Source: Cycas panzhihuaensis (lineage: Eukaryota > Plantae > Cycadophyta). From it: a stretch of 64,000 bases of DNA. The notes under the pieces were generated by a model. The model made no database searches. It was given only the letters and a program-made list of their open reading frames with translations, and was not told where the DNA came from. The translations under genes were made by a program, and so were the position numbers. Location of the stretch: NCBI GenBank assembly GCA_023213395.1, contig CM041465.1:246643741-246707740 (forward strand), given 5' to 3'. Positions 4,551-60,534 of the stretch are shown in pieces (within the stretch, counting starts at the first letter, position 1; each line of letters opens with the position of its first letter).

Positions 4551-4587
4551 CAACAAGAAGAAGTCACATCAAGGATGGTGCTTTTGT

Positions 4588-4599
4588 GAAGAGGAGAGA
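4588..4599 (+). other. Polypurine tract of the Tekay-like element
   Basis: GAAGAGGAGAGA lies just after pol and immediately before TGTAAGGAC. Confidence 0.75.
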
Positions 4600-7500: not shown

Positions 7501-7841
7501 TCAAGAATTCAGTTGGTTGGGTGGCAATTCTATCAAAGTAATTTGGTTGGGTATGATTGATGACCTAATGGTGTACTATATTGCTTTGACACTTAATTCT
7601 CTTTTCTAAAATGTTACTACTGGAAATGTGTTTTGAGTGCATTCTGCAAGACATCTTTGTTATCTTGATCTAGCTATATCTTTTGGGCATATGTTTTCCA
7701 CTATGCACATATGCAATACTCTATTTTATGCTTTTGCAGTTTAAGTGGTTTAGATGATGTTGGCTTGGTTAGTAGACTCAAGTGAGTTAGAACTAAGCGG
7801 GGTCATAACTAACTCTTAGTTAAAGTAGAGGGGTTGTGACA
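4600..7841 (+). repeat. 3' LTR of the Tekay-like element (~3.2 kb)
   Basis: Starts TGTAAGGAC after the PPT and ends GGGGTTGTGACA, typical Tekay termini. No partner LTR in the window confirms the right end. Confidence 0.65.
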
Positions 7842-8316: not shown

Positions 8317-9196
8317 TGTTGACTTCATCTCTGCCCCTTAGAAGGTACACTTGTCAAAAGGTCAGTTTTTGATAGTCTAAACTAGCCCTTATTGTCAACA
8401 TGCATGTCAATTACACATAGATATGCCACATAAGTCCACAATATGATAATAATCACAACCTTTTCACGACATTATAATCCATTACATCATCATAAATAAA
8501 TCAAAGCAACATGTGATACACCTTTTTCACATAACTTGTTATTCCATTAAGCAATATCAATGTTTACATCAATTTCACATCATCATATGGCTTATTCTTG
8601 TTAGAACACCATCCATATTACAATGCACTTAGCATCCATACTAGAAAACATGCCATAGAACTTAGGTACTTGGCTCTTACACTAGAGCATATGACATAGG
8701 AATGAATAACTTGGCTCTCACATTAGAGAGATTGACTTCTGATCAATTGATTTGCCTCACATCCAAAATCGTGAGAGAATGACCCATTAATACCCCATAT
8801 ATGCCTGTTAGCAAATGGATGTGACCAAGAGTCAGAATCATCTCTTTTACGTCTTTTCATATTTAATCCACCCACTACATAATGATTACACTTAACCATC
8901 CTTGTTCCAATCATCCGTCCATGTGTCTGTACAGTTTTGGTCATTGTTGGCTTACATTTTGCTTGTTTTGGTATGTGCATTTTAGTTTTGACATTGTTTT
9001 GTCGTGCGTTATTGTTTCGGAAAGCACCTTGTCATGCATTCTTTGAGAGGCTTCCATTGTTTTTTGCTAGATTCTTGTGTGTTTCACTGCTTGAACGCCT
9101 GTTAAGTTGAATATTTGGCACTCATAATATCTTGTTGGATGCCAATTACCATCTATTCCACTGCCTGAACGCACAGGAGTCAAATTTGACCCAACA
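8317..9196 (-). repeat. 3' LTR of G1
   Basis: TGTTGAC...GACCCAACA; aligns with 30765-31662. Confidence 0.92.
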
Positions 9197-9229
9197 TTTA
9201 TCTTAGGTCAATAAAAAGTGGTTGAGTGT

Positions 9230-28580: not shown

Positions 28581-28779
28581 TTCATTTAACCATCTTAAAG
28601 CCCTTTGTCTGCTTAATTTTGGTATCACCTTCCTTAGGTGAAGGTCTCTTCGGTGGCTTTTTTGCCTTCAAAGGCTGTTTAGGTGGCATTGGAGGGTCCC
28701 TTAGCTATCAAGGCTTATTTAGAGCCTACCATCACTCTTATAGCTAGGGTGACTTGGTTTTTGGGCATTACCATGAACT

Positions 28780-30535: not shown

Positions 30536-30750
30536 ATCAACACTGTTAGTCCCCCTCGGCTTGGACCTCCTGTTAGGTGGTCTCTTTGGTGGTTTTTTGC
30601 CTTCAAAGGTTGTTCAGTTGGCATTGGAAGGTACCGTAACTGTCGAGGCTTATTTAGAGCCTCACATCGCTCCTATAGTTAGGGTGACTTCGTTTTTGGA
30701 CATTATTTTGAAGAAAGCTCTGATTCTTCTTTCCCCCACTAGCGGACCTA

Positions 30751-30764: not shown

Positions 30765-31662
30765 TGTTGACATCCCCTCTACCCCTTAGAAGGCACACTT
30801 GTCAAAAGGTCACTTTCTGTTAGGCTAAACTAGGGCTTGTTGTCAACGGATAGATCAATTACGCATAGATATGCCCCATAAGTCCACAATATCACAATAA
30901 TCACAACCTTTTCACAACATTATAATCCATCACAACATCATAAATAAATTAAAGCAACATGTGATGTGGCTTTTCAATGTAACTCATTATTTCATTAAGC
31001 AATATCAATGTTCATATCAATTTCACATCATCATATGGATTTTTTCTGCTAGAACACCATACACTTGGCATCAGTACTAGAAAGCATGCCATAGAACTCA
31101 TATATTTGGCTCTCACACTAAAGCAAATGACATAGGAACGAATAACTTGGCTCTCACGCTAGAGAGAATGACTTATGATCAATTGACTTAGCTCTCCCAT
31201 CTAGAATGGCAAGAGAATGACCCATAAATACCCCATGCATGCCTTTTGGAGAACAATTGTGACCAATAGTCACAACCAACTGTTTTACGTAATGCACATT
31301 CTCTTGATAATTAATTGGCTACTGATTAATGCTTATATTTAACCATTCCAATTAATTGTCCATGTGTTTGTATGGTTTTGGCTATTGTTGGTTTGCAATT
31401 AGCCCATCCTAATTTGTGCATTCCTTGCACATTCCTCATGTGTTCTAGTTTTGGCATTGTTCCATTGTGTGTTCTTGTTCCATAATGCACCCTATCATGC
31501 ATTTCCCAAGAGGTTATTTCCAATGTTGTCTACTAGATTCTTGTGTATTCCATTGCTTGGATGTCTATTGGGCTGAATACTTGCACTCACAATGTCTTAT
31601 TGAATGCCAATTACCATTTGTTCCACTATTCAAATGCACAGGTGTTAGATTTGACCCCAACA
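30765..31662 (-). repeat. 5' LTR of G1
   Basis: TGTTGAC...GACCCCAACA, followed by TSD CATGG. Confidence 0.92.
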
Positions 31663-34600
31663 CATGGCATGTGACTCCTTCAAATCAAGAATTTAAGTTA
31701 AATAATAATATTTAGTAATGAAATTGTTTTTTTCTCATAATTCTAACCAAGTAAAAAATAAAAGGTTCTATATTGTTGGCTAGAAAACAATGGGCAACAA
31801 AGTAGTGAGCCATGAAATTGTGGGCCATAAAGCTAGAAAACCATAGGCTTTAAACCATTTTTATAGTTGAGTTGGGTTCTACCTATGCATTTGCATTTCA
31901 CAATTCATCCTTCAATGATTTCTCTTCTCTCATTTTCTTTTGTGTTTGCAAGTGCTTGGAGTTATTTGGAAGTCATCAAAGAGTTGTGTTGACATTATCA
32001 TTAGTCATTCATCACAATGGCTCTAAATATTTTGGTTTGGTGATAGCTAGAGGGAGGTTCAGATTGATGATTTCTTTCTTTTTTTCTTTTTTTTTTTCAG
32101 TTGAACTAGATGTTTTTATTAATGCAGAATATTACATATAATTTTAACAAAAATTGGGGAGAAAATTGTCAATCTCCTTCATACTTGTGGATGAAACAAT
32201 AGGAGCCAAAGATGACTCCTAGCACCAAAAAGGACAATTTTCATATAACAAACAAGTATCCTTTGCCACTAGGGGTAGTATACCATGCATTGAGAAGCCA
32301 CATTGGGTGGAGTAGAAAAATCACTAGGTAGAGGTTGGCTTGTTTAGCCATTATCATCCTTGTCTAGGCAATCTTCCTTCAAGCTACACATGCTTGATTC
32401 TATGTTGATGGGCTTATGAGGTGGTTGCCTAAAGTGCCATTCTTCTCCCTATTGCGAGTGTTGGCTAGTTTGAGGCCTATGTCTTGGGCTCCCAAGAGGT
32501 TGTAGAGGAGGAAAAACCCATATGTTGAGGGGCATTTACCTTGGGAGCTACTCTGACCCTTAGATCTCATTTAGTGTCTCCCTATATTTTGATTGTGTTG
32601 AGAGAGATTTTCTTTCAAAGGCGTCCCTCTCACAGTGCAAGGGGTTCATCCTTAATGGTCAATAAGTTCACATAAGAATGAAAGCTACACTTGCACCTTT
32701 TTGGCTCATACTAATTTATAATGAGTAATTGGATACTATAGTAGAACACATAACATCAATAAAACACATTGAGGAAGTTTGACTTGCAGAGAGAACATCA
32801 TTCATGTGCTTCTATATGCAATATAAAGTCTCCACTTTGAGAATGCTTCTAGTAGTTACGAAGGTTTGGAAGAAGACTCTATTATTGCCGAATAATGTTG
32901 TATTCCATCCAAATGGTTCATAAATGACAGGATTGGTAAGCTGATCGGTCTAAACCCAAGTAGACTTGGCTAGTTGACACCACTAGAATAGGTGGATAGG
33001 GATTTTTAACTAATCACAAGTGGGATAGGCTAGATTCACATGCCCAAGTTTGGTTGGTCTATATTTGGAAACTAACCTATTATGAAACAACAACTAGATA
33101 AAATAGGCTTTAGTGCACACTCCACACAACCTTTTGAATCATCAAAATGGAATACTCTTATTGTTGGACTATTTCCAAAGCATATTCAACTTTTCACTAA
33201 TTTGCCCTTCCAAGGAAATTGATTTATACATATGGAAGGTAGAAAGTTTGGTGAAAGACTTAGAGTAATTCTATGCCCAAGCCTTCCACCATTTGTATGA
33301 TTCGATATTTATGAAGTTGGAAAATAGTTCCAAATTTCATCCATGATGAGCCTATTCGAGTTCTTAAGCCTAGACTCTTGTTTGATGGTTGGCCATGATT
33401 TCCATTACCCTCTAATATAATCAAATAGTCCCCCAATAATGGCTAAGCCCTTCTTATGTAACCTTATGGTTTTGAACTAGAGTTTTCTTTCTAAGGTAGT
33501 AGATATCTTTCAAGATGATTGTGATCACCAAATCCTAGTGATTTTGGATTGATAACGTGTTTCTCGGTTCCTCTCTTTATACTGTGTTCCTAGGTTCCTC
33601 TCTCTACCACACTAGAAATTTCTTATAATCCTCTAAAGCTCACCCTAAATGGATTTGAAAAATGAGTGATTCAACTTTAATGGGCCTCAGGGAGATAAAG
33701 ATTGTATGGGGGAGTGAGTGAAGCCCTTTTGACCAGGAGGGCAAGAACAAGCTAAATTATGTTTGATAAAGGTCTTCTCGATTTTCTCAATCTCTATAGC
33801 TTTGATAAGCCACAACATACAGAGCCCAACCTTGCTACTTGATGTCAATCATACCCAAACCACCTTTACTCTTGTTGAAGCAAGCCCACACAAGGAATAA
33901 TAACAATTTGATAATAATGTTATATTCAAAGATATCAATAATTAAAATGCAAGTAAATGACAAATGGCTAGTCATTCGGGTGCTAAATAATAAAAAATAG
34001 TCCATGGTTAAAATAATAAGTCATATTTGTTCTTTTAATGCTCAACCCATAAATAAGCATTTATTTTGGAGCTAGCTTCCCAATAATTGAAGCATTTATT
34101 ATTGGGCTCATTAAAGTCGCTCCCTCCTTAAGATACCTTGCCCTTGAAGTATTTTTTTTTATCGCCTTGGACTTGAAAGATTCTTATCTTGAAAGGCTTC
34201 TCCCAGGAAGCATGGGAGATGCAATGTGCATTTTAAGTAACCCATATACATGCCATGCTCAAGATATCACGAGCACTTGGTCTACCTTTGTGTCATTTTA
34301 CATAAGTAACCTGTATGTATGCTCTTCTTTTTCATGATGATGACCTATGTTGGGTGACTTTTATACATGATTTTATGTGCGAAAGATCTTGGGACCTGTG
34401 TGTTGAGGATTCACATTGTGCCCATGAGAATTTGTCCTTGAGATGGGAAAATGACTTAGGGATGAATAGATGAGGTTGGTGTTGACAAGGGGCACAAATT
34501 AGGGGATATAGTTAGGGTTTCTTAACCGTGAGTCAATTAGATGGAGACACATGGGACAAGCAAATAAGTGATGAGATTTGGATTAATGGGCATAGTAGAA

Positions 34601-41346: not shown

Positions 41347-43629
41347 GTGGTCCTTCTTCGAGCAGATATAACACCCTTCCCACTGAGAGTGTTGTTTGCT
41401 TGACCCAGCCTCACTTGTTGGCTAGCTCTTCCTCGAGCTCTTTTGGTTTCTCGAACCCTCGCTGCTTGAAGTCTCTTCACTCCTGGAGGACTTCTTCCTT
41501 GACCGCTCACCCTTGACCCCTGTCTTCGGCTTGAACGACTTCTTACCTGTCTTCGTCTGCTCCCTAAACTTAGACATGCTAGGTTTCTTGGACCCCTCCT
41601 CTCGAAAGACCATAAATCTATCTGATACAACTATAGTAGCGATGACATTGTCCATATTCTGTCGCCTTAGCTCACTTTGAATCCGCGACTGAAGCCCTAC
41701 CATGAATCGAAACAGCTTGTCTGACTGACATATCCTTGATTTCCAGCATCAGAGACGTGAAAGCCTTGATATAGTCCCTTACCTTCCCTATTTGTTTCAA
41801 CTCCGACAGCTTTGTCCTCACTACCTATGCAGAGTTCCCAAGATGAAATTGATCCCTCAATGTGGCCTTCAATCCCTCCCAGTTATTAACCTCTACACCG
41901 CATCTTCCAACCGCTTTGTCCTCTGCTCTGGCCCTCCACCAAAGCTTGGCACTTCCAATGAAGTACATGGCTATTGTTCTCACTTGAGCCTCGTCCGAGA
42001 GGCCTGGCATGCCTGCTAGGTATTCCTCGACATCCCAGTAGAAATTCTCAAGGACCTTGTCGTCTTACACTCTGTCATAGGTTTTTGGCTTCTTAAGTTT
42101 GGGCTGAATCTGTTGGGTGTGGCTCCCCCTGTAGCTATGAACTGCTTCAAGAGGGCTATGTCCTCTGCCATCCTGATTTGGGTCCTTATACTTTCACCCA
42201 ACTGTGCTTGAAGGTCCTTCACCTCTATTTCTAGTGCTTGCACCTGTCCCTCCAAGTGTTTCACGCTTCGCCAAGTGCTCTGGCTAGTCACATTCTGATC
42301 GCATCTTTCGCATGTTCTACCTTCCTCTTGGTAGGATTCTGCATCACCAGCATAAGGGCTTCCCTCACCCTCACTACTTAGGTGTGGCTCATCTGCTCCT
42401 TGAACTTAGACATGTTAGGTTTCCTAAACCCCTCCTCTCGAAAGTCCATCAACCTATCTGCTACAACTATAGCAGCGACAACGTTGTCCACATTCTCTCG
42501 CCTTAGTTCACTTAGAGCCCACGGCTAAAGGTCTACCATGAATCGAAACCACCTGTCTTGCTCTGACATATCCTTGATTTCTAGCATCAGAGATGTGGAG
42601 GCCTTGATATAGTCCTTTACCTTTCCCTTCTGTTTCAACTCCAACAGATTTGTCCTCGCTATCCATGCATGAGTTCCCAAGACGAAATTGATCCCTCAAC
42701 GCGGTCTTCAATCCATCCTAGTCGTTAACCTCTACAATGTGTCTTCCAGCCGCTTTGTCCTCTGCTCTGGCCCTCCACCAAAGCTTGACACTTCCCGGGA
42801 AGTACCTGGTTGCTATTGTTCTCACTTGAGCCTCTTCCAAGAGGCCTGGCATGCCTGCTAGGTATTCCTCGACATCCAGTAGAAATTCTCAAAGACGTTG
42901 TCATCCCTTGCTCTGTCATAGGTTTCTGGCTCCTTGAGTTTGGGTTGAATCTGTTGGGTGTGGCTCCCCACTATAGCCATGAACCGCTTCAAGAGGGCTA
43001 TGTCCTCTACCATCCTAATTTGGGTCCTTATACTTTCACCCAACTGTGTTTTAAGGCCCTTCACCTCGGTTTCTAGTGCTTGCACCTGTCCCTCTAAGTG
43101 TTTCACCCTTCGCCAAGTGCTCTGGCAAGTCACATTTCGATCGCGTCTTTCACATGTTCTACCTTCCTCTTGGTAGGATTCTACATCACCAGCATAAGGG
43201 CTTCGCTCACCCTCACTGCTTAGGCGTGGCACATCTTGTTTGTCTGCCACAGCGGTCCTTCTTTGAACAAATATAACATCCTTCCCACTAAGAGTGTTGT
43301 TTGCTCGACCCAACCTCACCTGTTGGTTGGCTCTTCCTCAAGCTCTTTTGGTTCCCCGAACCCTCGCTGCTTGAAGTCCCTTCGCTCCCCGAGGACTTCT
43401 TCCTTGACCTCTCACCCTTGACCCTTGTCTTCGGTTTGAGCAACTTCTTACTTGTCTTCGTCTGCTCCCTGAACTTAGACGGGCTAGGTTTCTTGGATTC
43501 CTCCTCTCGAAAGTCCATCAACCTATCTACTGCAGCTATAACAACGATGACGTTGTCCATATTCTGTCGCCTTAGTTCACTTTGAACTCACGACTGAAGC
43601 CTTACCATGAATTGAAACAACCTATCTGG
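41347..43629 (-). repeat. gag: Right arm of gag-only array (units 41347-42392, 42393-43250 and the 3' part of the third unit)
   Basis: Reverse-complement copies of the same gag. The third unit continues at 59853-60534 beyond the G2 insertion. Confidence 0.9.
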
Positions 43630-44462
43630 TGTTGACTGGGGTTGTTCCCACTGCACTTGTGGGAACAATGCACTTGTCAAGGTTACACAGGCTATAGTCT
43701 AGTTAGGATACTATCAACGTGGTTATTCACATACATTCCACAGATTATTCATAGAATTATATCACAATAGTACACAGCAGCATAGAAATCAACACATATT
43801 CAGCACTTCATCCTTATAAACACAGAGAATACACAGTTTTCCACGTAACTCTTCTTTCCATTAAGTAATAAGTTCAATTACACAGAGGGCTGGAATGCAT
43901 TCCTGTGCATTCCAGCAGCATACACTCTTTCTGTTACAAGTGTACCTAGATGGTACTTATCACTAAACACTGCTTCAATCAGCTGTCATGCGTGCTGGCA
44001 TCTGTACCATTGCGTACCCTGAATATTCGGCTCTCACCCTAACCGAATGGTCCATGCGTACCTCCTTAAATATGCCTCTTCGTACCTTTTGGCTGAAGGG
44101 TTATGACTGCCTGTCATAACCGTACCCCTTCGATCATCGTACCCTTTCCTTAATCATTAGTTATACACTTAACTAATGTCTTCATTATGTCCGTAAAACG
44201 TCCTGCACGTCCGCGCCTTCCTGTGCTTCTAGTGGTCTCGTACTGTCGTGCGTATCGCTTTCGTTCAGTTCCGTTTCGCTGCTGGTACGTATATGTGTTA
44301 CGTACCGTTTCCAGGTATGCACCTGTCATACATACCCAGAATGCTGATCTTTCCACTGTTTCGCCTCGTGCGTACCTTCGTACGGTCCGTACTTGCACAT
44401 CTCGGGTTATCCAGCCTACCTTTGGTCTTCCAACAACCATATGATCAATTTATGCCCCAACA
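43630..44462 (-). repeat. 3' LTR of G2
   Basis: TGTTGAC...CCCCAACA; highly similar to 59020-59847. Candidate TATA (TATTTAA on minus) at 44066-44072. Confidence 0.96.
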
Positions 44463-46472: not shown

Positions 46473-49400
46473 CTACTCAATGTATGGTTTCAGTCTGCTA
46501 CCATTCACCCGAGTTGGTAGCATTGGTCCATCGATTTCCTGAAGTTGCACCGATCCGTTCTCGAAGACTTTTTCTGCGATGTACGCTCCCAACCACTGCA
46601 TCTTGAGTTTGCCAGGGTGCATTTTGAACTTGCTGTCGTAAAGCAGCATTTGATCACCTTCTTTGAACTGAGGTTTTCGTAAATGGCGGTCGTGCCATGC
46701 TTTTTGTTGTTGCCTTTCGACATTTTGCAACCATTTTACCATATGTCACTTCTCTTCTATTCGCACTAAGTCTTTCAATTGCTGCCGTAAGGACTGGAAG
46801 TCGTCTAATCGACATTGTATAGTAACTCATAGACTTGGTATCTCAAATTCCGTTAGAAGAATGGCTTCTGTGCTGTACACAAGCTATAATGGAGTTTGTC
46901 CAGTTGATCTTTTATATGTCGTTTGGAACGGCCATGGCACGGATGGCAATTTCTCGGCCCAATCAGATCTGCCGACGTCGCATATCTTCCTCCAGCAATT
47001 CTCAATTATCTTATTCGATCTTTCCGCTTGGCCATTTGCTCTCGGATAATAGGGAGTAGATTTTCGATGGTTCATCATGAACGCTGATGTCAATGTCTCT
47101 ATAGTTTGATTCAGAAAGTGGGCGCTTTGGTCGCTCACAATTTCCAAGGGGCATCCAAATTGTGTAATAATCACCTCGTATAGAAATCGAGCTGTACTTT
47201 CCGCATCAACTTTCTGTAATGCTCGCGCTTCTACCCACTTCGTCATATAGCCAGTTGCCACCAAAATGTATCAGGCTTTCGATCGACGAGCGGCTGGTTT
47301 AATTGGCCCCACGAAGTCGAGTCCCCATTTCTCAAATGGTGCTAAAGGTAAAATGGGATGTAGGGGTTGGAAATCCTGTCGATTAGGTTTTCCAACTTGC
47401 TGGCAATAGTTGCAAGCTTGAATCCACTTCCTGACGTCCTCGAACATGGATGGCCACCAGAATCCAGACATCAAAATTTTTCCCATGTGGCTAATTTGTC
47501 CATGTGTCCACCTGTTACTCCTTCGTGTGCTTGCGACATGATTTGGTTGATCTCGTGTGGTCGAACACAGTGTCTTAACACTTCGTCTGGCCCCAATTTG
47601 TATAATTCCCCATTAATTAGTTGATATGGTTCTACTTTTCTGATAAAATTCCTTTTTCCCGTGCGATCTAATTCTGTCGACACTTCTCCAGTCGCTAAGT
47701 ATTCTGGTATTCCCTCATACTAGTTAGTTGGGACCGCTTCCACACTGAATAGTGCTGCGTCTGGAAAGTCGTCTGGCACTCCCATGGCTCTTTCCCCGTT
47801 TGTGATTCTTGACAATTGATCAGGGATGATATGGGCTTTTCCGGGTTTCACAATGATCTTAAAAGAAAATTCTTGGAACAACATCAACCACCTGCTGATT
47901 TGCCCTTGCATGATCGGTTTATTCACCAAATACATCAACGCTTGGTGATCGACGAAGAACAAAAATGGATATGACAATAGATAGTGTCGAAATTTCTGCA
48001 ATGCATATACCATGCCGAGTGCTTCCCTCTCTGTCATTGTGTAATTCTGTTCGGCCTTTGTAAGTTTTTGACTGGCGAAGTATATCGGGTGATCCGTCTT
48101 GTCGTCACTGGGTTGTGCCAATACGCATCCAATAGTGTATTGTGACGCATCCACATGTACATGGAAGGTCTTCTTCCAATCTGGAAATCGCAGTATAGGT
48201 ACTGCTATGATAGCTTGTTTTAGTGTTTTAAATGCTTGCTGCTGTTCCTCCGTCCATGCCCATTCAATGTTCTTTTTCAATAATTCTTCCAGGGGTCCTG
48301 ATATGTATGCATATCCCCTGATAAACTTTCTATAGTATCCCGTTAACCCCAAAAAACGTTTCAGTTGTTTCCTCGTAAGTGGCATAGGGAAGTGCGATTG
48401 CGATACTTTATCGGATCTCGGCAATCCTTCCTTGCTGACTATGTGCCCCAACAGGTTTCCAAAGGGTACCAGGAAGGCACATTTTTTTGGATTCAGGCAC
48501 AACTTGTTTTCACGGCATGTCTGTAACATTTCCCTCAAGTTCTCCATGTGATCCTTCATTAATCCATACAATGTCCAATCATCTAGGAATACCGCAACTT
48601 TTTCTCCAATAAATTTCTGAAATATATTAATTACAATCCGTTAAAATGTAATCAGTGCATTCATAAGACCGAATGACATCACTTTATATGCATACGTTCC
48701 CCATTCTGTCACAAATGTGGTTTTCGCTTGATCCTCTGGGGCAATTTGCACTTGATTGTACTCGCTGAATTCATCGGTGAAGGAGTAGATTTCATTCCCT
48801 CCAACTGCTTCCAGAATATCCTCTGTAAAAGGTAATGGAAAGGGATCCTTCTTTGTTATCTTATTTAGTTGTCTGTAATCCACATAGACACAGATTCTTC
48901 CATTCTTCTTGGGAACTATCACTACAGGGCTCACCTAGTCACTGTAGTCGATTTCGTAAATATATCTTGCTTCTAACATTTTGTCTAGTTCGGTTTCACT
49001 TTTTCCTTATATTTGGGATTCATCCGGTATGGCCTCTGTTTTTCCAGTTTCGCATCTTCCACTAAATCGATGTGATGCATTCCTATTTTCGGAGGAATGC
49101 CTTTTAGGTCCTTGTATGACAATGCAAATACGTCGCGGAATTCTTCAAACAATCACGGGCTTCAAGCATCTTGCCTAATGATCCCAATAATTCCAATTCA
49201 TATGAGTTTGGGATTGTCTTGGCTGCCAACATTAATCTCAGTAGTTTTCAACTTAGTTACTCCCACATCTTCCGTATTTCCGATTTTGTGTCTCGGAGTA
49301 TCCTCTAACTTTCTTTCTCCAATATTAAGTTCTGTGAATTCTACAGAGTAATTCATAATTTCTTCTTCTTCACTATGTACTGATTCTTCCTCCTCTTGGT

Positions 49401-49712
49401 TTGTCAGTTCTTGTTCTAGTTTTATACTCATTAATCTAATATGTTTTAGGATTCTATCTATTTTCTTGTTTTCCGAAGTATGCCTAAAGGTTTTTATAAA
49501 GGATTTCTTCAAGCCTCCCCAAGTCACGTATAAACTTTGTTCCTTTTTGAGGAACCAGTCCTTGGCTACTCTTCCCAGGGTATGGTAAAAATAGTTAGGC
49601 CAATTTTGTTTGGGTATACTTAAGGATGTCCATTTTTGTTTACATTTTTGTATATGCTCCCTAGGGTTTTGACCTACATAGAATATTGGGGTGTATAATT
49701 GTTTTGGATGAT
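46473..49712 (-). pseudogene. pol: G2 pol 3' part (capsid-like module, RT, RNase H, integrase)
   Basis: VDYRQLNK; VFLDDWTLYG; HVDASQY; NYTMTEREAL; PFEKWGLDFVGPI; VSDQSAHF; GKLKMQWLGAY. Confidence 0.95.
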
Positions 49713-49713
49713 C

Positions 49714-50004
49714 GAATCAGATTCAAATCTGATTCATTGTTTACAAAGGTCACTGATTGACCTTTACCTTCCTTAATGTTGCATAGGAGTTCTTCACTCC
49801 CTATCATATGTTGAGAAGCTCCTGAGTCGACGATCTAAGTGTGATCAACCTTGGATGACTGGTATACGCAAAACAGTTTGTCTTCATTGTGCAAACTGAT
49901 TAAAGTGGCGTTGGTAGCCACCTCTTTGACCCCCCCTTCCTCTTGGACCTCCTCGATAGGCACCTTGATTTGGTCGACCAAATCGAGGTGCCTATCGAGA
50001 AGGT
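49714..50004. repeat. Templated filler: copy of 51300-51548 bounded by two palindromes
   Basis: Direct duplication; palindromes at 49714-49735 and 49947-50004. Confidence 0.9.
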
Positions 50005-52435
50005 AACATTTGGTTGCTTCTTACATGGTACAGGAGGTGTAGATGAAGAACATGGTGTATAAGATTGAGAGGAAGGGAAGTCCTCAACAATCTTTTTTTC
50101 TTTGTCAATGGGGGGTTGGATTGATGCCATATCCAACTCTTTCTGATTATTCTCAACAAAGATTACATCTCTTGAGAGATGCATTTTTCTCCCAACTGGA
50201 TCATACAACTTGTAGGCTTTGCTATGAATTGCATATCCTACAAAGATGCATTTAAGACTATGTTTGTCCAACTTTGTTCTTTGTTGATCTGGTATGTGCA
50301 TATACGCAGTGCACCCGAATGTCCTCAAATGGTTGATAGTTGGCTTCTTACCACCATGCCTCCTCAAGTGTGATGTCTGGATCATTGTAGGACTCGATTG
50401 GCCACATAGGTCAGATGAAATGCTTCGGCCCAGTAAGCTCTTGGAAGTCCTTTTGCATGCATCATCATTTTGGCTTTATTAGCCAAAGTTCTGTTCATTC
50501 TTTTGGAGACTCCATTTTGTTGAGGAGTATGAGGAGCTGTGAATTGTCTCCGAATTCCATTATCCTTGCAGAATTGGTTGAATTCATTTGAAGTGAATTC
50601 ACCTCCATTATCTGACCTTAATGTGCCAATTGAGTAGCCAGATTCATTTTCTACTTCCGCCTTAAACTCTTTGAACTTGGAGAAGGCCTCTGATTTTTGC
50701 TTTCGGAAAGTAGACCTAGACTTTGTGAGAGAAGTCATCAATGAAAGATATGTAATACAATGCTCCTCCAAATGATTGAGTGGACATGGGTCCACACAAG
50801 TCTGAGTGAACTAACTGCAATGGATAAGATGCACGCCATGCTTTGCCTTTAAGAAAAGACAACCGATGTTGTGTCCCCATTATGCAAGCTTCACAAAGAC
50901 ATTTTGAACCATACATCTTTGGAAGCCCATACACCATGTTTTTGCTTATCATCTGCTTCAAATTGTCCAGGCGTAAGTGACCTAGACGTTGATGTCATAA
51001 TTGAATTTTCGACAAAGATATGGAACCAGAATAAGCAAAATCAAGCGTAATGTTATTGGCATCCAACTTATAAAGATCTTGATCCTCACAGGCAACAGCT
51101 ACGATCTGGTCATCTTTGTCACTAATGATACATTTCCCATTTTTGAATAGTACGTTCATCTGTTGCTTGTCCAACTGGCTAACAGATAGCAGATTCTTCT
51201 CCATGGAAGGAATAAAGTAGGCATCACTGTTGGGAAATGATGAGGAAGGATTTTGTGAAGAATGAAAAGGAGCTATAGTGCCTATTCCTGAAATCTCAAC
51301 TGATTCATTGTTTTCAAAGGTCACTGATTGACCTTTACCTTCCTTAATGTTGCATAGGAGTTCTTCACTCCTTGTCATATGTTGAGAAGCTCCTGAGTCG
51401 ACGATCCAAGTGTGATCAACCTTGGATGACTGGTATGCGCAAAACAGTTTGTCTTCATTGGCAAACTAATTAAAGTGGTGTTGGTAGCCACCTCTTTGAC
51501 CCCCCCCTTTCTCTTGGACCTCCTCGATAGGCACCTCGATTTGGTCGAGGGGGATTCTATCCGATCCGTCATTGAATTTTTGTTGGAACTGTTGCCTTGG
51601 CTGCTGTTGTCGTTGACCTTGTGGTCATTGCTGCTGCTGTTGTCGTCGTAGATCCGCCCGCTTCTTTCTGCAATCAGGTGCAATGTGGCCAAGTTTGCCA
51701 CAATAATGACACACAACATTGGACTTAGAAGATCCAATGTTCATGTTTCCAAACTACTTTGTGAAAGCAGGTTTGGAGTTTTGATTTGCCTTTGCCTTGG
51801 CTGTGAAAGCACCTAGTGTAGATGGTTCTTCATTATCCTTCGCATAAATTTGTTCTTCTTGAAGCAATAAGCTTTCAAGTTCATTGAATTTCATATGCTT
51901 TATTGAACCATCTCGTGTGGTTGATGATATGAAGCCGTTGTAGTCCTTAGGCAATGCCTTTGTGATGGAGGTGATGATTTCGTCCCTTGTAGCAGGACTA
52001 CCTAGAGTACTCAATTCATTACAAACCTCCTTAATGGAGGTCAAGAATGTCGACATTGGCTTTACAAATTTGATAGAATACAATTTGGCTTTTATCATCA
52101 AAATGTGAGCTTCATCTCGCCTTTCATACAAAGAGGACAATGTGTCCCATGTTTCTTTAGAAGATTTGGCAGAAGAAATATTCTGATCTATATGTACATC
52201 CACAATCATATGAATAAATGCCAAAGCAATTGCCTTTGGCCTCCCAAGCAAGAACACGTTCATAATCAACTTGAATTTCATCATCAACAAGTGCAGGATT
52301 GGGGATTCTTCCAGAAACATATCCCCAAAATTCATTCATTATCAAGAGATTTTGTGTGATTCTTTTCCATTCTTGATAATTTGCTTGTCCTGTTAGCCTT
52401 ATGGTGCATGCATTGAGCATGTTTATGGCAGCCAT
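50005..52435 (-). pseudogene. gag: Copia D gag, protease, integrase
   Basis: LTGQANYQEWK; WIVDSGASQHMT; LQLVHSDLCGP; LRSDNGGEF; PQQNGVSKRMNRT; KCIFVGY. Confidence 0.93.
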
Positions 52436-53074
52436 CTTTCCACTTGTTTAAAAGCTAACAAATAACTTGGTAACTTCAAAGCTTTTGTCGTTTAAGTTCC
52501 GCCTTCTAACAACACCACCAGTCCTGATTTTACAAGAAGATCCAACAACTGGTGGAGTGATGAGGGGTGGAGGACGTCGGCTATTGAATTGGTCCAAAGT
52601 TAAGTGTAGCAGAGGCAAGGATTCAGCCTTTTTCGAGCCTCTCCAGCTAGATTTTAAATTCACTTTTAGACAAATTTTAAGTGAATTTTTAAAGTCCTTT
52701 TATTTGGATTTTGATGCTATGCCTTTTAGCTTACAATGAATGCTTCTTAAGAAGCAAGTACATGAGAGAATGAGCACTTTTATTAAGTGATTTTTAAGTG
52801 CTTTGTGATCCAAGTAAAGTGCTTTGAATGCTTGAGTACAATGATGTAAGTACTTTGAGTACTTAGTGAAAAAATGATGCAAAAAACCTTTGATGAAGAT
52901 CACAGAAGTGGGTTCTTTTTAACCCTCCAAATCCGATGTAGTGAAGAAGCCACTAGTCAAGTGTACTCAAAAGTGCTCCAAAGCCAACACGAACTCCAAG
53001 TAGTAAGTTGTTGAGACTTTAAAATAGTCTCAACAATCCAAAAAAATGTGATTTTATTAAGTGTCAAATTTAGC

Positions 53075-53228
53075 CTTCTTTTTGAGCTTTTTGAAGGCTA
53101 AGGTCACCATGCAAGGTGCCAAAAAATGAACTTAGATGGTGATGTTTCTCACTTCTTTTTGAGCTTTTTGAAGGCTAAGGTCACCATGCAAGGTGCCAAA
53201 AAATGAACTTAGATGGTGATGTTTCTCA
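53075..53228. repeat. Perfect tandem duplication, 2 x 77 bp, in the Copia D leader
   Basis: CTTCTTTTTGAGCTTTTTGAAGG at 53075 and 53152. Confidence 0.95.
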
Positions 53229-54806
53229 CCTTTACAATGTGAATATGCCTTTTGATTACTTTATTTAAGCTCAAAGTGCTTTACTGGCATTAAACAATGT
53301 GTTAAATGAGCTTAAAAAGACATAAGACAAATGCTGAAAATCAACTTTTTTAGCAACTTTGCCTCATTAGAACACCTCGCAGGGAGTCTTTTTAGGCATT
53401 TAAATCATGCAACATTGAACTTCAATAAGAGGAGAATGACTTAGCATGTGTAATTCGTTGAGTCCTCTATCCATCAAGGAGATTTTAATAAACTTAAGTA
53501 CTAAAAAAGTACTTTAGTAAGCCAAAAAAAACTTTAAAAAAATGAGATTAAATCTCATTAAAAATAGTCTTAAAGCATTTAAGGCTTTAATGATACCTTA
53601 AATCTTGAAATGGCTGAGCCTCATGTAGCATCAAAGAGCATTAAGCCCCCCCCCCGCCTTGCTTAGGAAAAACTCTTAAGGTACAAAAAACCTCTTAATC
53701 CTTGATTAATAAAAAAGTTCTCTTAAAAAAACCTTTAGAGAAATAACCTTTGATTAAAAAGAGAATATGTTTGGCATATGCCAATTTGCATATTCTAAAG
53801 TTATGAAGTCCAAAGAAAAAATTGATTTATATAAAAAATCGAACGCGGACTTTGCGTTTTTGCAGGCGCTGTTCCCGAGATGAATTGTGCGGGCCCCACC
53901 TGCGTGCTACTGGCTATGCTCCTTCGTGCCGTTGCGGGTCCCACCGATTGCTGTGCCAGCCGTGCTGGGTGCGTCTCCCCGTGCATGAGCCGTGCAGGCT
54001 CGTCCAATTTTTGGAAGGTTCCGGAAGGTTCTTCCGCGTCTGCGCAAATATGAGCTTGTGAGACCCGTGCAGGTCTGTCCAGTCGCAGGTCAGTTTCCTC
54101 CCGTGTGCGGGTGTTTTCTCTGTGAGAGTTCCGTCCGTGAGCAAGTGCAGGTCCACATGGTGGAGGCAGCAGTAGGTGCGGGTCTTCTTGTGTGGACAGA
54201 GCAGGGTCTTTCCGTAAGTGCTCTTCAGCAAGAGCTAAAAAAAATCTTGGAGATGCAGCCAAAGTGCAGGGTGCTCTTTAGGAGCAGGGTTCCAGACTTA
54301 AATGCAGGCTTCAGCAGATGTTCCTTCCACAGTAGGTTCTCAGCAAAGGAGGATGGAGTCCCCTTTAACTTATTGCAGTTAAGCAGCCAAAGATGAGGTT
54401 CAATGAGATTAAATTAGGGACAGAGGCAGGGTTAAGTGAGATTAAATCTCCTCATCAAAGATGGATTTAAGGACAGCAAGATTTCAGAATTCTGTGCAAG
54501 ACCTTTCAGTGGCTGGATCTCTCAAAAATGTGGGACAACATTAAATGCAAGCTTAAAGATAGGACAACAATTGTCCAAATTGCCAAGAATGTGATGAGAG
54601 GACAGAATTAAAGCTAAGATGGACCAAGAAATGATAGAGTTAAATGGAGAAATCACCCATGAAAAATTCCAAGAAATGGACCAAGAAGGGACAGAATTAA
54701 ATGCTGAAATTACCCATGCATCTGTCTCCAAGAATGTGCTAAGAAAGCTTCAAGACAACAACAAACTTAGGTAAATTCACTAAATCAAAGCTCAAACAAC
54801 CATAGA

Positions 54807-54818
54807 GCTCTGATACCA
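54807..54818 (-). other. PBS (tRNA-iMet) of Copia D
   Basis: Reverse complement reads TGGTATCAGAGC, 2 nt from the LTR. Confidence 0.95.
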
Positions 54819-54820
54819 AT

Positions 54821-55415
54821 TGTTAGAATGGGCTTTAAGCCACATATAGGTCCAAGATCTTTAATGAAAGCACAATACCATAAATGTATTAAGCATAAGT
54901 AACAAAGAACTTTAAGGAATTCAAAGAATTCAAAGGACTCAAAGAGAAATAGGAGCAAGAACACAATACCCAAGATGAGGTGTTGGAATTAGTCCAACAA
55001 CCAAAGAATGCCTTTAACTTGATTAGCAAACTGATAGAATAACAATGAGCTCCAACTCTTGAATGAGCAACAATGAGGAATAGGTCTCATTATATAGAGT
55101 GAGATGAGAGACCTAAGGCCTTGGATGTTTGACTAGTGTCAAACATCTAAGATACATGCCTTGGATGATTGACATGTGTCTTTTTGGAAGCTCTTTGTGT
55201 GAGCAAAAATGCAATGGGGTCATTTGACCCTCAAGTTACATAAGTGACAACATTGTGTCACTAGTCATAAAGTGGGTGTGTACTTTATCACTTAAGTGAT
55301 AAAGTCACCCCTAAAGTACAAAAGTGCACATGAGCATTAAAGTGCACACATAATACAAAAATAGAAAGTACATAAGCTTAACATATAAACATAAGGTAAA
55401 CCATGAGGTTTAACA
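54821..55415 (-). repeat. 5' LTR of Copia D
   Basis: TGTTA...TAACA termini. G2 coding sequence resumes at 55416. Confidence 0.88.
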
Positions 55416-58400
55416 GAAACATCATTTGTAACTCTTTCCAGTTTTTAAGAATGGCTTGGTGGGCTAGGTACTAATACCAAGCCTTTCCCCGTAAGGTCAA
55501 TACTAGGTCCTGTTGCCATTGGGTTTTGTCCCAATTCCCGTGTTCTATCCAATATTCAACACAATGAGTTAGGTGGGTAGTCCCATATAACTGCTCTCCG
55601 TAGAATGGCTTAACATGCTTCCCAATGTAAATTTCATGATTTATTTCTTCTGGGATAATAACTCTATTGTCTAGACCAGAGTCTCTAGAAGTACTTACCA
55701 GTGATTCTCCTTCCATTTTCCTGGTTTTGGTGCCAATCATTGGAAGGGATCGATCGGGTGGGTATACTTCTAAGGAAGAGGAGGAAGGAGTGTTACTTCC
55801 TTCCTCGGGTTGTACTAAGGGGGGGGGGGGGGTAGGGAATCTACCTCAGGACCCACGCCTGATATAGAAGGGATGTCGGGGTTAGTATTAGCTACTATAA
55901 AACTATGAAAAATATTAGGTAAGCTAGGGGGTTGTTGGTCTAGTTTGCTGTCATCCCTTAAACTATCAGTAATCATTATATACTCAAAAGAATCTAAATT
56001 ATCATCAATGTCTTTAGTTACACATTTGGATAATAAATTACATGTATGAGAAGAGGAGTTTACTTCATAGGCATCCTGCAGCTAATAATCCACTAATCTC
56101 ATTCTGTGTTCGTCATCCGAAGAGTTGTATATTTCTCCGAAATAGGTCGGTTCTTCTTCTTGATAGTTGGTCGATGTCGTGGGCTCTTCCGCAGTATGAT
56201 AGAGGTTTCTTTCCTCGAGGAAAGATGATGTTGTTTTGCTTGTGACAGTCGTGTTGGATCCTTCATCTGATATCATTTCGATGGAATTCCTTCCCAACAT
56301 TGGTAATACTACTTTGTTTCCATTATCCGTTAAGGTGAAGGTCACGCTTTTCCAATTTTGGAGGCATTGCATCTTGTATAGCCATGGCCTCCCCAAGAGT
56401 GCTGGATAGGGCGTTGCCCCTTTTTCTGTTTCCGCGATTGTGAAATCAATTTTTACCACAATCCCTGCCACATCTACCTTGATGTTGGCTAATCTTCCCA
56501 TAGGTCGTACTAATAATTCGTTGGCCAATTTCAACGAATATGTTGCTGCTTCTAACTTTGGGCTTCCCAGTTTCCGCCATGTCGAAGCTGGTAATACGTT
56601 GACAGTCGCGTCTCCATCAACAATTACTTTTGGGAATGTTTTTTTCAGTACCATCATAGTTATCATTGGATCCATATCGAATGATAGCATTATTTGCTTT
56701 AAACTCTTTGTAATTCCACGTTGTAGTACTCCTCCTTTAATCCAATCAATGACTTGGCATAAGGGGATGGTCAATTGTAGTTGTTTGACCAAATTCTCCA
56801 TCAACAACAGCATTCTCGGAATGTCTTCCACTGGTAATCCTTTAAATAGTTCTTCCAAATGCACCATCTGAGGTTGCCCCTTTGGCTCTTCTGGTATGTT
56901 CTCTTTTTCTTTCTGCTTATCTTTCTATACGTATACGTATTTGGTTTCTGGTTTTCCCATTGGTAATGTATTTTCTTCTCGAGTTAAGCCATCCTACACT
57001 TGTTTTGCTTTTTTAAATCGATCCATTTCTGTTTGCGGACCGGGTATCTTTTGTTTTGTTTCTCCTTCTGCTTATTCTGGAGTTTTACGTTTTTAGTTTC
57101 TGGTATAATCGTCATTAAGTTGGTGGCTTTGGCCTTCCCTTTACAATCCTCCGTCTTATGGTCACTTGGGCCGTAGTTGTTACATATGAACAGTTTCTGT
57201 TCGTATTCCTGCTTAGTTGGGCATTTTGACTTCCAGCGCTCAAATTGCAAACAGATGAGGCATCTACCCATTGGTGGTTTCTTTCTCGAGGGCTTTTGTG
57301 TGCCCCTCGTTGTATAAACATTTCGAGGTGGGTTGCCTCCCCTTCCCCTACCTCATCCTCTGTAGGCTTTCCCTCTGGGATTGTAGAAACAATCCTTAGT
57401 CATATGCGTATCTACCTCGCATATGTGGCACCATTTGTCTTGTTGGTGCAACGCACTATTTTTTAGATTCAATTTGCATTCTTTAGTTGTATGTGAATTC
57501 TCTTCACAGATATGGCACCATTTGGTTATCCTCTTGGCATGGTCTTTCTTTTTCGTCATTTCTTCTTCTTCTCTGCTATTTCTGATTTTTAGCCCAGCCA
57601 CTTCTTTTCTTAAGGCTTTCAATTCCGATTCCTCTTCTGTTATTCCCACCTGGCAGAAGGGTCGGTTATACTGATTTTGCTTGAGTTCCCTAATCTCCTC
57701 TTGCAATCTTAATAGTAGGGAGTCATGTCCTCCTGCCTGTGCATCCATCTCCATGTCAAAATCCAATGTTAAATCTTGGGCATTTTTAAACGATTTCAAC
57801 GGATGGGCATGCATCATAGCTCTCAGTTTTTCATTCAATCCTCTCACAAAATAGTTCTTCGTGTTGTGGTCGATCGCTTTCGTTAATCATACTGGCCGTG
57901 ATGATTTTCATTCTGCTGATATAAGTTAGCACTGATTCTCCTACTTTGTTAAATTTCCTCAAGGCGATTTCCATCGCTCACATTACTTTAACTTCTGAAA
58001 TCTTTCTTCGAAGGATTTCTTGATCGTTGCCCATGAATCATTCTTGTTTATTTCTTTGTACAATGCCAATGGTACTCCCCTTAGTGTGCAGGCGAATCTG
58101 GCTTTTATTTCATCCTCGTCTGTAATCTTTTTCACATCAATCAGATTTTGAAAGAAGTATACGTGTTCTGCTGCGTCTGAAGTGTCATTGAAAATCAACT
58201 TTCCAAAATCTCTGTAATCATCCATCTTGGGGGATTGCAACGGTGTCCCACCTGGTGGTGATTCTTCCCTTTTCTCCTCCTTCGGAGATGCACTTGGAGT
58301 GCCTACTACTGTATTATCCTTCCCAAACAACGGATTCTTAAATGGAGTTTTGATATGTATAGGTTCTACTACACCTGGCACTTGTATAGTTAACGGTGTC

Positions 58401-58879
58401 ACTATAATATATGATTGATCAGATCCCTTTTCTGATGAATCTTCAAAAAGCTGTCTTGTGAGCTTATTTTCCTAATTTGTCGAGGGACCTTCCTCCGCCT
58501 TCTTTTCGCTGTCACTTAGGTCCTTCAGACTGTCCTCCATAGGTATACTTCCCTCTTTTAAGGTTTCTTGATGCTTTTCATCCACCTTTGGTTTTCCTTC
58601 AAATTCTAGGCTAAACAAATCATCTTTGATTGGGGTTGGTGTTAATACCATACGTTCGCCATTAGTTCCCTCTTCTTGTTCTTGAGGTGTCTGGGCTCCA
58701 CTTGCCTCAGATCCTTCAACGGACTGTCCCTTAGTCTCGTTATTTTGCGAATTTAATCTCCTCGCCCTTCTCAGTTTTGATTCCTTCGACCATCTTAATG
58801 CCCTTTGTCTGCTGGTTTCCTTCTCTATACCAGTAACCTTTTGTGGCTCTTCTGACCTTGAAGGCCTCTTAGGTGGCAT
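55416..58879 (-). pseudogene. gag: G2 gag, zinc knuckles, protease and linker
   Basis: MPPKRPSR start; FACTLRG..WATIKKSFEERF; CCHC knuckles; VIVDGDATVNVL and LLGRPWL protease motifs. Confidence 0.92.
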
Positions 58880-59006
58880 TGGAAGGCCCCCTGGCTATCG
58901 GTGGCTTAGTTACAGCCTGCCATCACGATGGCAGCCAGGGTCCTCTGCCCTTTACACATTCCTTTCTTTGAAACTCTTGGGCCCTGTCCCTCCTCAACGG
59001 ACGTAA

Positions 59007-59018
59007 GCAACGGAACCA
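59007..59018 (-). other. PBS of G2, complementary to the tRNA-Glu 3' end (12 nt)
   Basis: Minus strand TGGTTCCGTTGC. Plant cytosolic tRNA-Glu(CTC) ends ...GGCAACGGAA-CCA (recalled). Confidence 0.85.
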
Positions 59019-59019
59019 A

Positions 59020-59847
59020 AGTTGACTGGGGTTGTTCCCACAACACTTGTGGGAACAGTGCACTTGTCAAGGTTACACATGCTATAGTCTAGTTAGGATA
59101 CTGTCAACATGGTTATTCACATACATTTCACAGATTATTCACAGAATTATATCACAATAGTACACAACAGCACAGAAATCAACACATATTCAACACTTCA
59201 TCCTTATAAACACAGAGAATACATAGTTTTCCACGTAACTCTTCTTTCCATTAAGTAATAAGTTCAATTACACAGAGGGCTGGAATGTATTCCTGTGCAT
59301 TCCAAAGAAGATACACTCTTTACATTACATGCGTACCTAGATGGTACTTATCACTAAACACTGCTTCAATCGACTGTCATGCGTGCTGGCATCTGTACCA
59401 TTGTGTACCCTGAATATTCGGCTCTCACCCTAACCGAATGGTCCATGCGTACCTCCTTAAATATGCCTCTTCGTACCTTTTGGCTGAAGTGTTATGACTG
59501 CCTGTCATAACCGTACCCCTTCAGTCATACGTACCCTTTCCTTAATCATTAGTTATATACTTAACTAATGTCTTCATTATGTCCGTACGTCCGCGATGCT
59601 TTCTGGCTTTCCGGCTTCCACCGTCTTGCATCGTGCGTATCGCTTCCATTTAGTTCCGTTCCGCTGCTAGTACGTATCTGTGTTACATACCCGTTCCGGG
59701 TACGCGCCTATCATACGTACCCAAAATGTTGGTTTTTCTACTGTTTTGCCTCGTGTGTACCTTCGTACGGTCCATACCTACACATCTCGGGTTATCCAGC
59801 CTACCTCTGGTCTTCCAACAGCCATATGATCAATTTATGCCCCAACA
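59020..59847 (-). repeat. 5' LTR of G2
   Basis: Matches 43630-44462; the inner terminal base is changed (AGTTGAC). Confidence 0.96.
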
Positions 59848-59852
59848 TCTAG

Positions 59853-60534
59853 CTCTGACATATCCTTGATTTCCAGCATCAGAGACGTGAAGGCCTTGAT
59901 ATAGTCCCTTACCTTCCTTGTCTGTTTCAACTCCGACAGCTTTGTCCTCGCTATCCATACAAAATTCCCAGAACAAAATTGATCCCTCAATGCGGTATTC
60001 AATCCCTCCGAATCGTTAACCTCTACAACGCGTCTTCCAATCGCGCTTTGTCCTCTGCTCTGGCCCTCCACCAAAGCTTAGCACTTCTAGTGAAGTACAT
60101 GGCTGTTGTTCTCACTTGAGCCTCGTCTGAGAGGCCTGGCATGCTTGCTAGGTATTCCTCAACATCCCAGTAGAAATTCTCAAGGACCTTGTTGTCCCTC
60201 GCTCCGTCATAGGCTCCTTGAGTTTGGGCTGAATCTGTTGGGTGTGGCTCCCCCTTATAGCCATGAACAACTTCAAGAGGGCTATGTCTTCTGCCATCCT
60301 GATTTGGGTCTTTATACTTTTACACAACTGTGCTTGCAGTTCCTTCACCTCGGTTTCTAGTGCCTACACTTGTCCCTCCAAGTGATTCACTCCTTGTCGA
60401 GTGCTCTGGCTAGTCACATTCTGGTCGCGTCTTTCGCATGTTCTACCTTCCTCTTGGTAGGATTCTGCATCACTAGCATAAGGGCTTCCTTCATCCTCAC
60501 TGCTTAGGCGTGGCTCATCTTGTTCGTGTGCCAT
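59853..60534 (-). pseudogene. gag: Outermost gag unit of the array (5' part)
   Basis: Begins ATGGCACACGAACAAGATGAGCCACGC (MAHEQDEPR) and joins 43629 when G2 is removed. Confidence 0.9.

Follow-up and report, generated by a model that had tools for sequence, protein, structure and literature searches.

The LTRs of G2, a Ty3/gypsy retrotransposon in a 64-kb stretch of Cycas panzhihuaensis DNA (hereafter the window, meaning the whole stretch that was analysed), carry two boxes that match internal parts of tRNA-Glu(CUC), the same tRNA whose 3' end matches the PBS of the element. The likeness of the boxes to their cognate tRNA is confirmed as real and beyond chance. Based on their orientation and on their counterparts in an older relative, we infer that the boxes probably originated by capture of primer-tRNA sequence. 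We also propose, more tentatively and with a confidence that falls slightly short of probable, that the boxes captured from tRNA-Glu(CUC) were kept for use as auxiliary primer-docking or strand-transfer sites.

G2 lies on the minus strand, and its LTR ends, domain order and PBS all fit a Ty3/gypsy LTR retrotransposon (Table 1). Its two LTRs are ~90% identical in a pairwise alignment, end in TG..CA (TGTTG...CAACA), and are flanked by a TSD in which four of five bases are equal (TCTGG / TCTAG). The Pfam matches in the minus-strand ORFs run PR - RT - RNase H - INT, which is the Ty3/gypsy order; the ORFs are broken, and a copia-like fragment lies between PR and RT. A single spacer base (59019) separates the PBS from the end of the LTR, where base 59020 is an A private to G2 and a T in nearly all family contigs. 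ARAGORN found no tRNA gene anywhere in the 64-kb window, and a search of 58900-59900 against Rfam at E<=10 gave no tRNA match; these negatives, for the window and for the LTR respectively, rule out a reading of the boxes as a tRNA gene, a tRNA pseudogene or the head of a SINE.

Table 1. Positions within the window of the features of G2 and of its older relative G1.
Feature	Position	Strand	Remarks
G2 5' LTR	59020..59847	-	828 nt, U3-R-U5 on minus strand; from repeat search and pairwise alignment
G2 3' LTR	43630..44462	-	also holds both boxes (43695-43712, 44023-44039)
PBS	59007..59018	-	+ strand GCAACGGAACCA; once in window
Box 1 (D-arm box)	59081..59102	-	core TAGTCTAGTTAGGATACT at 59085-59102 and 43695-43712
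Box 2 (anticodon-arm box)	59414..59433	-	core ATATTCGGCTCTCACCC at 59414-59430 and 44023-44039
TATA-like TATTTAA	59457..59463	-	conserved in both LTRs; 33 nt upstream of box 2
Predicted hairpin around box 2	59416..59439	-	stem ATTCGG/CCGAAT (59416-59421 / 59434-59439); MFE and centroid folds
Perfect 11-bp U5 hairpin	59033..59057	-	inverted repeat I3 and fold; between box 1 and LTR end
G2 aspartyl protease	56082-56867	-	Pfam match weak, below curated cut-off
G2 RVT_1	48641-48934	-	Pfam match
G2 RT_RNaseH	47720-48571	-	Pfam match
G2 Integrase_H2C2	47271-47683	-	Pfam match
G2 rve (integrase core)	46884-47264	-	Pfam match below cut-off
G1 5' LTR anticodon-arm boxes	31102..31165	-	tandem 31102-31123 and 31145-31165, then a third, degenerate copy
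G1 3' LTR anticodon-arm boxes	8662..8729	-	8662-8687 (back to tRNA position 20) and 8709-8729
G1 3' LTR D-arm box remnant	8369..8379	-	TTGATAGTCTA against tRNA positions 5-14; weak alone

The tRNA sequence used for comparison comes from 123 tRNA-Glu(CUC) genes on 120 metagenome contigs of plant DNA, from which the host's own set may differ. The pattern used to find them fixed the 5' 15 nt, which are confirmed by a poplar small RNA (PMC4189724), together with the 3' acceptor strand, and left free the D loop after nt 15, the anticodon arm and the T arm. The genes are nearly uniform and read TCCGTTGTAGTCTAG(T/C)TGGT(T/C)AGGATA(C/T)TCGGCTCTCACCCGA(G/A)AGACC...GCAACGGA, with D-loop variants (T/C)TGGT(T/C)A, and the sequence that an earlier, sequence-only reading of this DNA had given for tRNA-Glu(CTC) was thus essentially right. 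At the top pair of the anticodon stem the commonest form, ATACTCGG..CCGAGAG, is found in ~97/123 genes; the ATATT isodecoder, ATATTCGG..CCGAAAG, accounts for about 20-22, and ATATTTGG for two. The discriminator base is A in 117 of the 123, as the PBS demands. None of the 120 contigs has any likeness to the window. When 862 kb of unrelated plant DNA was examined outside tRNA genes, the box strings turned up in two truncated tRNA-Glu copies (L022, L024) and otherwise only in a sequence repeated at three loci and in two 9-mers attributable to chance.

Against these genes, the PBS equals the last 12 nt of mature tRNA-Glu (discriminator A plus CCA; string positions 65-76) at 12/12, and the match ends there, the sequence downstream having no continuation into the T arm. 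The core of box 1 corresponds to tRNA string positions 8-29 at 18/18 with a 4-nt gap in the D loop. Next to it, GCTA at 59081-59084 stands where the tRNA has GTTG, a difference of two transitions (T>C and G>A in tRNA sense), both of which leave a G-U pair in RNA; with this extension the pairing of box 1 would reach tRNA position 4, and the fact that both mismatches would keep pairing favours a docking role. The core of box 2 corresponds to positions 25-41 and spans the 5' strand of the anticodon stem, the CUC loop and the start of the 3' strand. It matches the ATATTCGG isodecoder at 17/17, or at 19/20 when extended to 59433, and the commonest tRNA-Glu(CUC) form at 16/17. Box 2 includes the anticodon CTC, which makes its match specific to the CUC isoacceptor; that the boxes match the same tRNA as the PBS, and this isoacceptor in particular, is a point in favour of docking. 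All three matches are tRNA-sense on the + strand, and the element RNA is therefore antisense to the tRNA.

In these respects the sequence-only reading stands. It had claimed a 12-nt PBS for tRNA-Glu and two further motifs of the same polarity in both LTRs, where a search by exact sequence located them. It had described motif 1 as the D arm minus four loop nucleotides, extendable through GCTA by G-U pairing, and motif 2 as the anticodon arm at 16-17/17. Its distances are borne out as well, with box 1 ending 66 nt upstream of the PBS (~65 nt, in U5, had been claimed) and box 2 lying the claimed 33 nt past TATTTAA, ~395 nt upstream of the PBS. Within the G2 LTR we found no T-arm or B-box match of at least 9 nt.

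On the tRNA, the stretches matched by the two boxes have 5 nt in common (positions 25-29), and the boxes therefore cannot both pair in full with one tRNA at the same time. They also differ at tRNA position 28, which is C in box 1 and T in box 2, so at most one box can be perfect for any one isodecoder. Both features would count against docking.

The chance expectation, a check that the sequence-only reading had proposed, was computed from 5000 dinucleotide-preserving shuffles of the LTR, scored by local SW alignment against both isodecoders. For box 1, the probability of a score of at least 25 is 0.009. The values for box 2 run from 6e-4, for a score of at least 29 against the common tRNA form, to 2e-5 against the ATATT form, for which the observed SW of 35 was reached by no shuffle (Gumbel fit ~1.6e-5). 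The opposite, element-sense strand scores 15-16, which is the shuffle mean. Since chance 10-11-mers of the tRNA do occur in the whole 64-kb window, either half of box 1 alone means little; the joint chance of a collinear box 1 pair and a box 2, on the right strand of an LTR primed by the same tRNA, is roughly 1e-7 to 5e-6. A likeness so far from chance, confined to the tRNA-sense strand, is a further point in favour of docking. The leader at 58850-59006 has a tRNA score at the shuffle mean. Two other candidate matches were set aside as chance: a second PBS-like string at 58990-59006 (..GTCCC..CAACGGA), whose SW of 14 equals the shuffle mean, and a U3 segment at 59649-59660 that is 11/12 complementary to the PBS region, which, for the number of pairs tested, is no more than chance would give and of which only AGTTCCGTT is common to the 3' LTR.

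Family copies were sought by comparing contigs of four organisms to 58900-59900 at a likeness of at least 80%, and 897 to 7654 pieces per run could be placed, with coverage of both boxes. The G2 family is thus very high-copy and common to several species. A protein scan of viral contigs returned no other family member; one 99-aa protein homologue was found. Among the 40 best-supported variant sites (95 further sites exist beyond these), the only one within a box is 59419 C>T, a CpG transition, and such sparse variation would favour docking. In one organism most copies have this variant; it turns the box into the ATATTTGG form, as in G1, and breaks pairing with a C30 tRNA. In box 1, an extra C or T behind 59094 shortens the D-loop gap of some copies from 4 nt to 3, and a diverged subfamily retains TAGTCTAGTT-T-AGGATAC with a different downstream flank. 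The polymorphism at the CpG and in the length of the gap tells against docking. It sits better with the possibility that the boxes are inert fossils, that is, accidental RT copies of the primer tRNA (made by over-extension or template switching) that were fixed in a hugely amplified master copy and have no present role. We regard this as a serious alternative that is nevertheless rather doubtful.

The older relative G1, a much older minus-strand element in the same window, bears on both possibilities. Its LTRs (~8317-9200 and 30765-31665) are 75% alike, and its PBS, for the same tRNA, has decayed by three transitions (GGCAACGAAATTAA). A blastn comparison of the G1 LTRs with the G2 LTRs gave no match, and the two share short collinear blocks only, whose small number and nearness to chance make them insufficient by themselves as footprinting evidence. 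The G1 LTRs carry two to three tandem anticodon-arm boxes, in the same orientation as in G2 and in the same place, just downstream of the G1 TATA, that match tRNA-Glu from position 20 or 25 to 46-47. With SW scores of 27-34, this recurrence of the anticodon-arm boxes is itself real and beyond chance. The D-arm box of G1 is nearly lost and its anticodon-arm boxes have pairing-breaking changes, a decay that would count against docking, though G1 is a very old copy.

The sequence-only reading had listed a relic of tRNA capture only as an alternative; capture now appears to be at least the likely origin of the boxes. Three features argue for it, namely the orientation that plus-strand read-through would yield, G1 copies that are longer than pairing needs, and tandem duplication. 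The same features suit inert fossils: the G1 similarity is contiguous over tRNA 20-47 and decays at its edges, and the boxes vary in number. The boxes are not, however, simple read-through fossils, because they lie upstream of the PBS, inside both LTRs and out of register with it; their distances from the PBS, 66 and 395 nt, weigh against the fossil explanation more generally. An in-register fossil of this kind was rejected since the PBS match stops at 12 nt and the leader scores as shuffled sequence does. We also considered that an insertion of 311 nt, flanked by a 5-bp TSD (ATACT/ATATT), had divided a single tRNA copy into the two boxes. Terminal features are absent from the DNA between the boxes, the 311 nt are present in every family contig that spans them, and a G1 anticodon box that reaches back to position 20 would make the overlap greater than 5 nt, so this candidate was discarded.

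In G2, all 35 of 35 bases of the boxes are kept, while the remaining LTR has diverged from G1 almost beyond recognition, past detection by blastn. At a rough 13-18% per-site change on the G2 lineage, perfect retention would have a probability of ~0.001-0.01 by our own estimate. The boxes also hold the same positions in the G1 and G2 lineages. Both observations favour docking and speak against inert fossils.

Based on the TATA-like motif, the G2 TSS probably lies at ~59428-59440. By LTR logic box 1, being 3' of the TATA and 5' of the PBS, should be part of the genomic RNA. Box 2 would be the start of R and so present at both RNA ends; its 5' copy, 33 nt past the TATA, may straddle the TSS, and a putative TSS at ~59431 would cut the 5' copy of the box 2 hairpin. 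Such a cut of the 5' copy may weaken the argument for docking. Box 2 of the 3' LTR is certainly present, in U3-R at the 3' end of the RNA. In the predicted hairpin (self-fold -9.7 kcal/mol) the element RNA presents a loop that could pair with the anticodon loop of the tRNA, and this apparent display of box 2 on a loop favours docking. Next to box 1, GTCAAC (59103-59108) is predicted to pair with GTTGAC at the LTR end, which would place box 1 beside the PBS; both hexamers are found in G1 too. The four U5 copies are too diverged for an informative RNAalifold result.

This setting raises the possibility that the boxes are cis-elements unrelated to tRNA, such as a downstream promoter or initiator, a TAR-like 5' hairpin, or a U5 integrase or packaging signal, and that their likeness to tRNA is historical or incidental. 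Box 2 sits at the expected TSS in a predicted hairpin, and in G1 it has multiplied in tandem, a frequent trait of enhancer-like elements; box 1 belongs to a U5 domain that has a perfect hairpin and the GTCAAC/GTTGAC stem conserved in G1. Nevertheless, a chance likeness to the cognate tRNA is statistically excluded, and such functions would explain the conservation only if capture came first; they also leave unexplained why the bases kept are those identical to the tRNA. We consider cis-elements of this kind very improbable.

Cofolding of the leader with the tRNA, another check that the sequence-only reading had proposed, was carried out with a 452-nt leader and an unmodified tRNA. The predicted complex pairs tRNA positions 4-41 contiguously, with 4-28 (or 4-19) on box 1 and the remainder on box 2. 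Its energy of -180 to -183 kcal/mol compares with -126.2 when the leader folds alone and with -23 to -26.5 for the tRNA alone. This favourable calculated energy, with pairing across both boxes, supports a docking role.

We propose that pieces of the primer tRNA-Glu(CUC) were copied into an ancestral LTR, in the orientation expected if RT read through into the primer during plus-strand synthesis, and that the boxes may owe their retention since then to their use by the element RNA as additional places to dock the tRNA. The PBS would grip the tRNA 3' end. The U5 box would pair with the opened 5' acceptor strand and the D arm, with the G18-G19/D part of the D loop skipped, and the start-of-R box, shown on a hairpin loop, would pair with the anticodon loop and the 5' strand of its stem. 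Together the boxes could aid primer selection, unfolding and annealing. The anticodon-arm box is also present at the 3' end of the RNA, and could there aid the first strand transfer. A more elaborate possibility, which we think unlikely, is that the 5' half of tRNA-Glu (4-41) acts as a molecular splint between the U5 and start-of-R boxes, between the 5' and 3' ends, or between dimer RNAs, and thereby brings the genome into a folded or circular form in which initiation and the first strand transfer can proceed. The element would have built such a device from the cDNA of its own primer, and its dose would depend on how many times the anticodon-arm box is repeated in tandem (1-3 copies among relatives). 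That the two boxes can share one tRNA as a splint is a matter of calculation only.

A further alternative starts from tRNA positions 4-41, to which the element RNA is complementary and which belong to the half that is the source of 5' halves and fragments: the boxes could make the element RNA a target or a sponge of the abundant ones derived from tRNA-Glu(CUC), either for silencing by the host or for titration of the fragments by the element. A 20-nt poplar small RNA identical to tRNA-Glu positions 1-20 (PMC4189724) is in keeping with this. A harmful target site, however, should vanish from so successful a family rather than stay perfect, and the 4-nt gap in box 1 would break Argonaute-type pairing. 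There is, moreover, no link between the boxes and silencing, and we hold this explanation to be very improbable.

LTR retrotransposons make up the bulk of many plant genomes. To our knowledge, detailed accounts of auxiliary contacts that a primer tRNA makes with the genome are limited to Ty1 and Ty3 of yeast and to a few retroviruses, and the surveys of plant LTR retrotransposons that we know of record the type of PBS only. A hugely amplified family with long, exact primer-complementary boxes would offer a testable case for primer choice and strand transfer in plants, and G2 points to the capture of primer cDNA as a route by which contacts of this kind could arise. Even if the boxes are inert, they would still be a marker of reverse-transcription accidents and a caution for the prediction of tRNA-fragment targets in plant genomes.

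The proposal that the boxes dock the primer finds precedents, by analogy, in Ty3, Ty1, HIV-1 and RSV. Ty3 has a 5'-3' bipartite PBS whose T- and D-arm contacts lie in U3 at the other RNA end and are thought to bridge the ends (PMC5371799). G2 resembles it in being a gypsy element that combines a short PBS for the tRNA 3' end with complementarity to internal tRNA arms in LTR-derived sequence. It differs in its primer, tRNA-Glu(CUC) rather than tRNAiMet, in the arms concerned (D and anticodon rather than T and D), in the placement of its boxes, which would occupy R and U5 in addition to the 3' U3-R, and in a PBS of 12 nt rather than 8. Other contacts of this kind are boxes 0, 1 and 2.1 of Ty1, the HIV-1 A-rich loop with the anticodon loop, the HIV-1 PAS with the T arm, and RSV U5 with the T arm (PMC5371799; PMC13191261). 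As in G2, sequences near the PBS match internal parts of the cognate primer tRNA in Ty1 and the retroviruses, where they tune initiation, and the A-rich loop, like box 2 in its predicted hairpin, presents a complement of the anticodon loop on a loop. Contacts in Ty1 and the retroviruses span 4-8 nt, no more than tens of nucleotides away from the PBS, whereas the G2 boxes are 17-22 nt long and one of them is ~395 nt upstream, at the putative start of R. Piekna-Przybylska et al. 2010 (cited in PMC11241228) reportedly described a tRNA-Lys3-like sequence in the U3-R of HIV-1 that promotes minus-strand transfer. This sequence resembles the G2 boxes in being related to the primer tRNA, in lying inside the U3-R of the LTR, in a presumed acquisition from the primer and in a proposed role in the first strand transfer. 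It is said to be tRNA-sense in the viral RNA and to pair with the PBS. The G2 boxes, in contrast, are antisense and would pair with the tRNA itself, and the PBS complement in the U3 of G2 is at chance level only.

Sequences derived from small-RNA genes are also found within the LTRs of other elements, as in the tRNA-derived LTRs of Helenus and TRIMp3 and the 5S-derived LTRs of Cassandra; Helenus has a whole sense tRNA-like unit, unrelated to the tRNA of its own PBS, with A and B boxes as a Pol III promoter (PMC10886601). G2 shares with these the location within LTRs. Unlike Helenus, it has antisense fragments of its own primer, with no B box or Rfam tRNA match, and is an autonomous-type gypsy element; an LTR of the Helenus/TRIMp3 type was rejected for G2, whose LTR holds no sense tRNA unit with A and B boxes. 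In lentiviruses, the PBS is adjoined by a retained 'primer over-extension sequence' (PMC13191261). Such read-through fossils have the same tRNA orientation relative to the element as the G2 boxes, but they are in register and directly downstream of the PBS, whereas the G2 boxes are upstream, in both LTRs and non-contiguous. Half-tRNA priming of the copia, Ty5 or Bianca type was likewise rejected, given that the PBS at the LTR end is of the canonical 3'-end type and that the anticodon-arm box is ~395 nt away from it. Our literature search found no description of such boxes in plant elements; tRNA-Glu is absent from the primer tRNAs named in one plant survey, and the available portion of its supplements has no 'Glu' entry (PMC6317226). 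G2 thus differs from the Ty1, Ty3 and retroviral systems in the primer, the arms that would be used, the box length of 17-22 nt, and the placement of the boxes in U5 and at the putative start of R.

The DNA flanking G2, a minus-strand Ty3/gypsy element, is mutually paralogous on the two sides (42000-43629 and 59848-60511), with blocks 84-92% identical and internal periods of approximately 840 and 1070 nt. The insertion target of G2 was accordingly an array of repeated units, the one that the sequence-only reading had called the 'gag-only' array. The target site duplication reads TCTGG / TCTAG. G1, an older minus-strand relative in the same window, is a very old insertion of ~22 kb; identity between its two LTRs (8317-9200 and 30765-31665) is just 75%, and three transitions separate its PBS from the 3' end of tRNA-Glu. 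Within G1, 30650-30705 recurs at 28715-28770 (87.5%).

Inside G2, the stretch 49480-55620, between protease and RT, looks like one or more nested copia-like fragments rather than additional capsid modules of the element. Direct repeats in the same interval (49729-49889 and 51300-51460) are 97% alike, and a 77-nt unit occurs as two exact tandem copies at 53075-53228. The minus-strand ORFs with the two domain matches tabulated below also fall within 49480-55620.

Features located in the window and in two plant metagenome contigs (L022, L024)
Feature	Position	Strand	Setting
Copia-type gag family PF14223 match	51754-52335	minus	ORF in G2, between protease and RT
Retroviral SH3-like domain PF25597 match	49900-50385	minus	ORF in G2, between protease and RT
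Perfect hairpin, 11 bp, 3-nt loop	59033-59057		U5 of G2 5' LTR, between D-arm box and LTR end
Shortened tRNA-Glu copy	L022:~8510	minus (of locus)	plant metagenome contig
Shortened tRNA-Glu copy	L024:~9992	minus (of locus)	plant metagenome contig

Both shortened copies track the tRNA-Glu gene as far as GGCTCT and diverge after it (..GGATATTCGGCTCTTTCCTG); they are 5'-half tRNA-Glu pseudogenes. Among the fetched plant tRNA-Glu genes, three isodecoder classes stand side by side at the top pair of the anticodon stem (C-G; T-A; T with TTTGG).

The U5 hairpin of G2 recurs in the 3' LTR (43643-43667), altered in the loop and beside it. In U3 of the 5' LTR, plus-strand TTTAGTTCCGTT (59649-59660) is complementary at 11/12 positions to the PBS region 59009-59020, which would allow pairing between U3 RNA and the PBS; the 3' LTR shares only AGTTCCGTT (44267-44275) with this segment. 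Statistically, the complementarity of the G2 segment to the PBS is at chance level. The segment brings to mind a tRNA-like one, complementary to the PBS, that has reportedly been found in HIV-1 U3-R.
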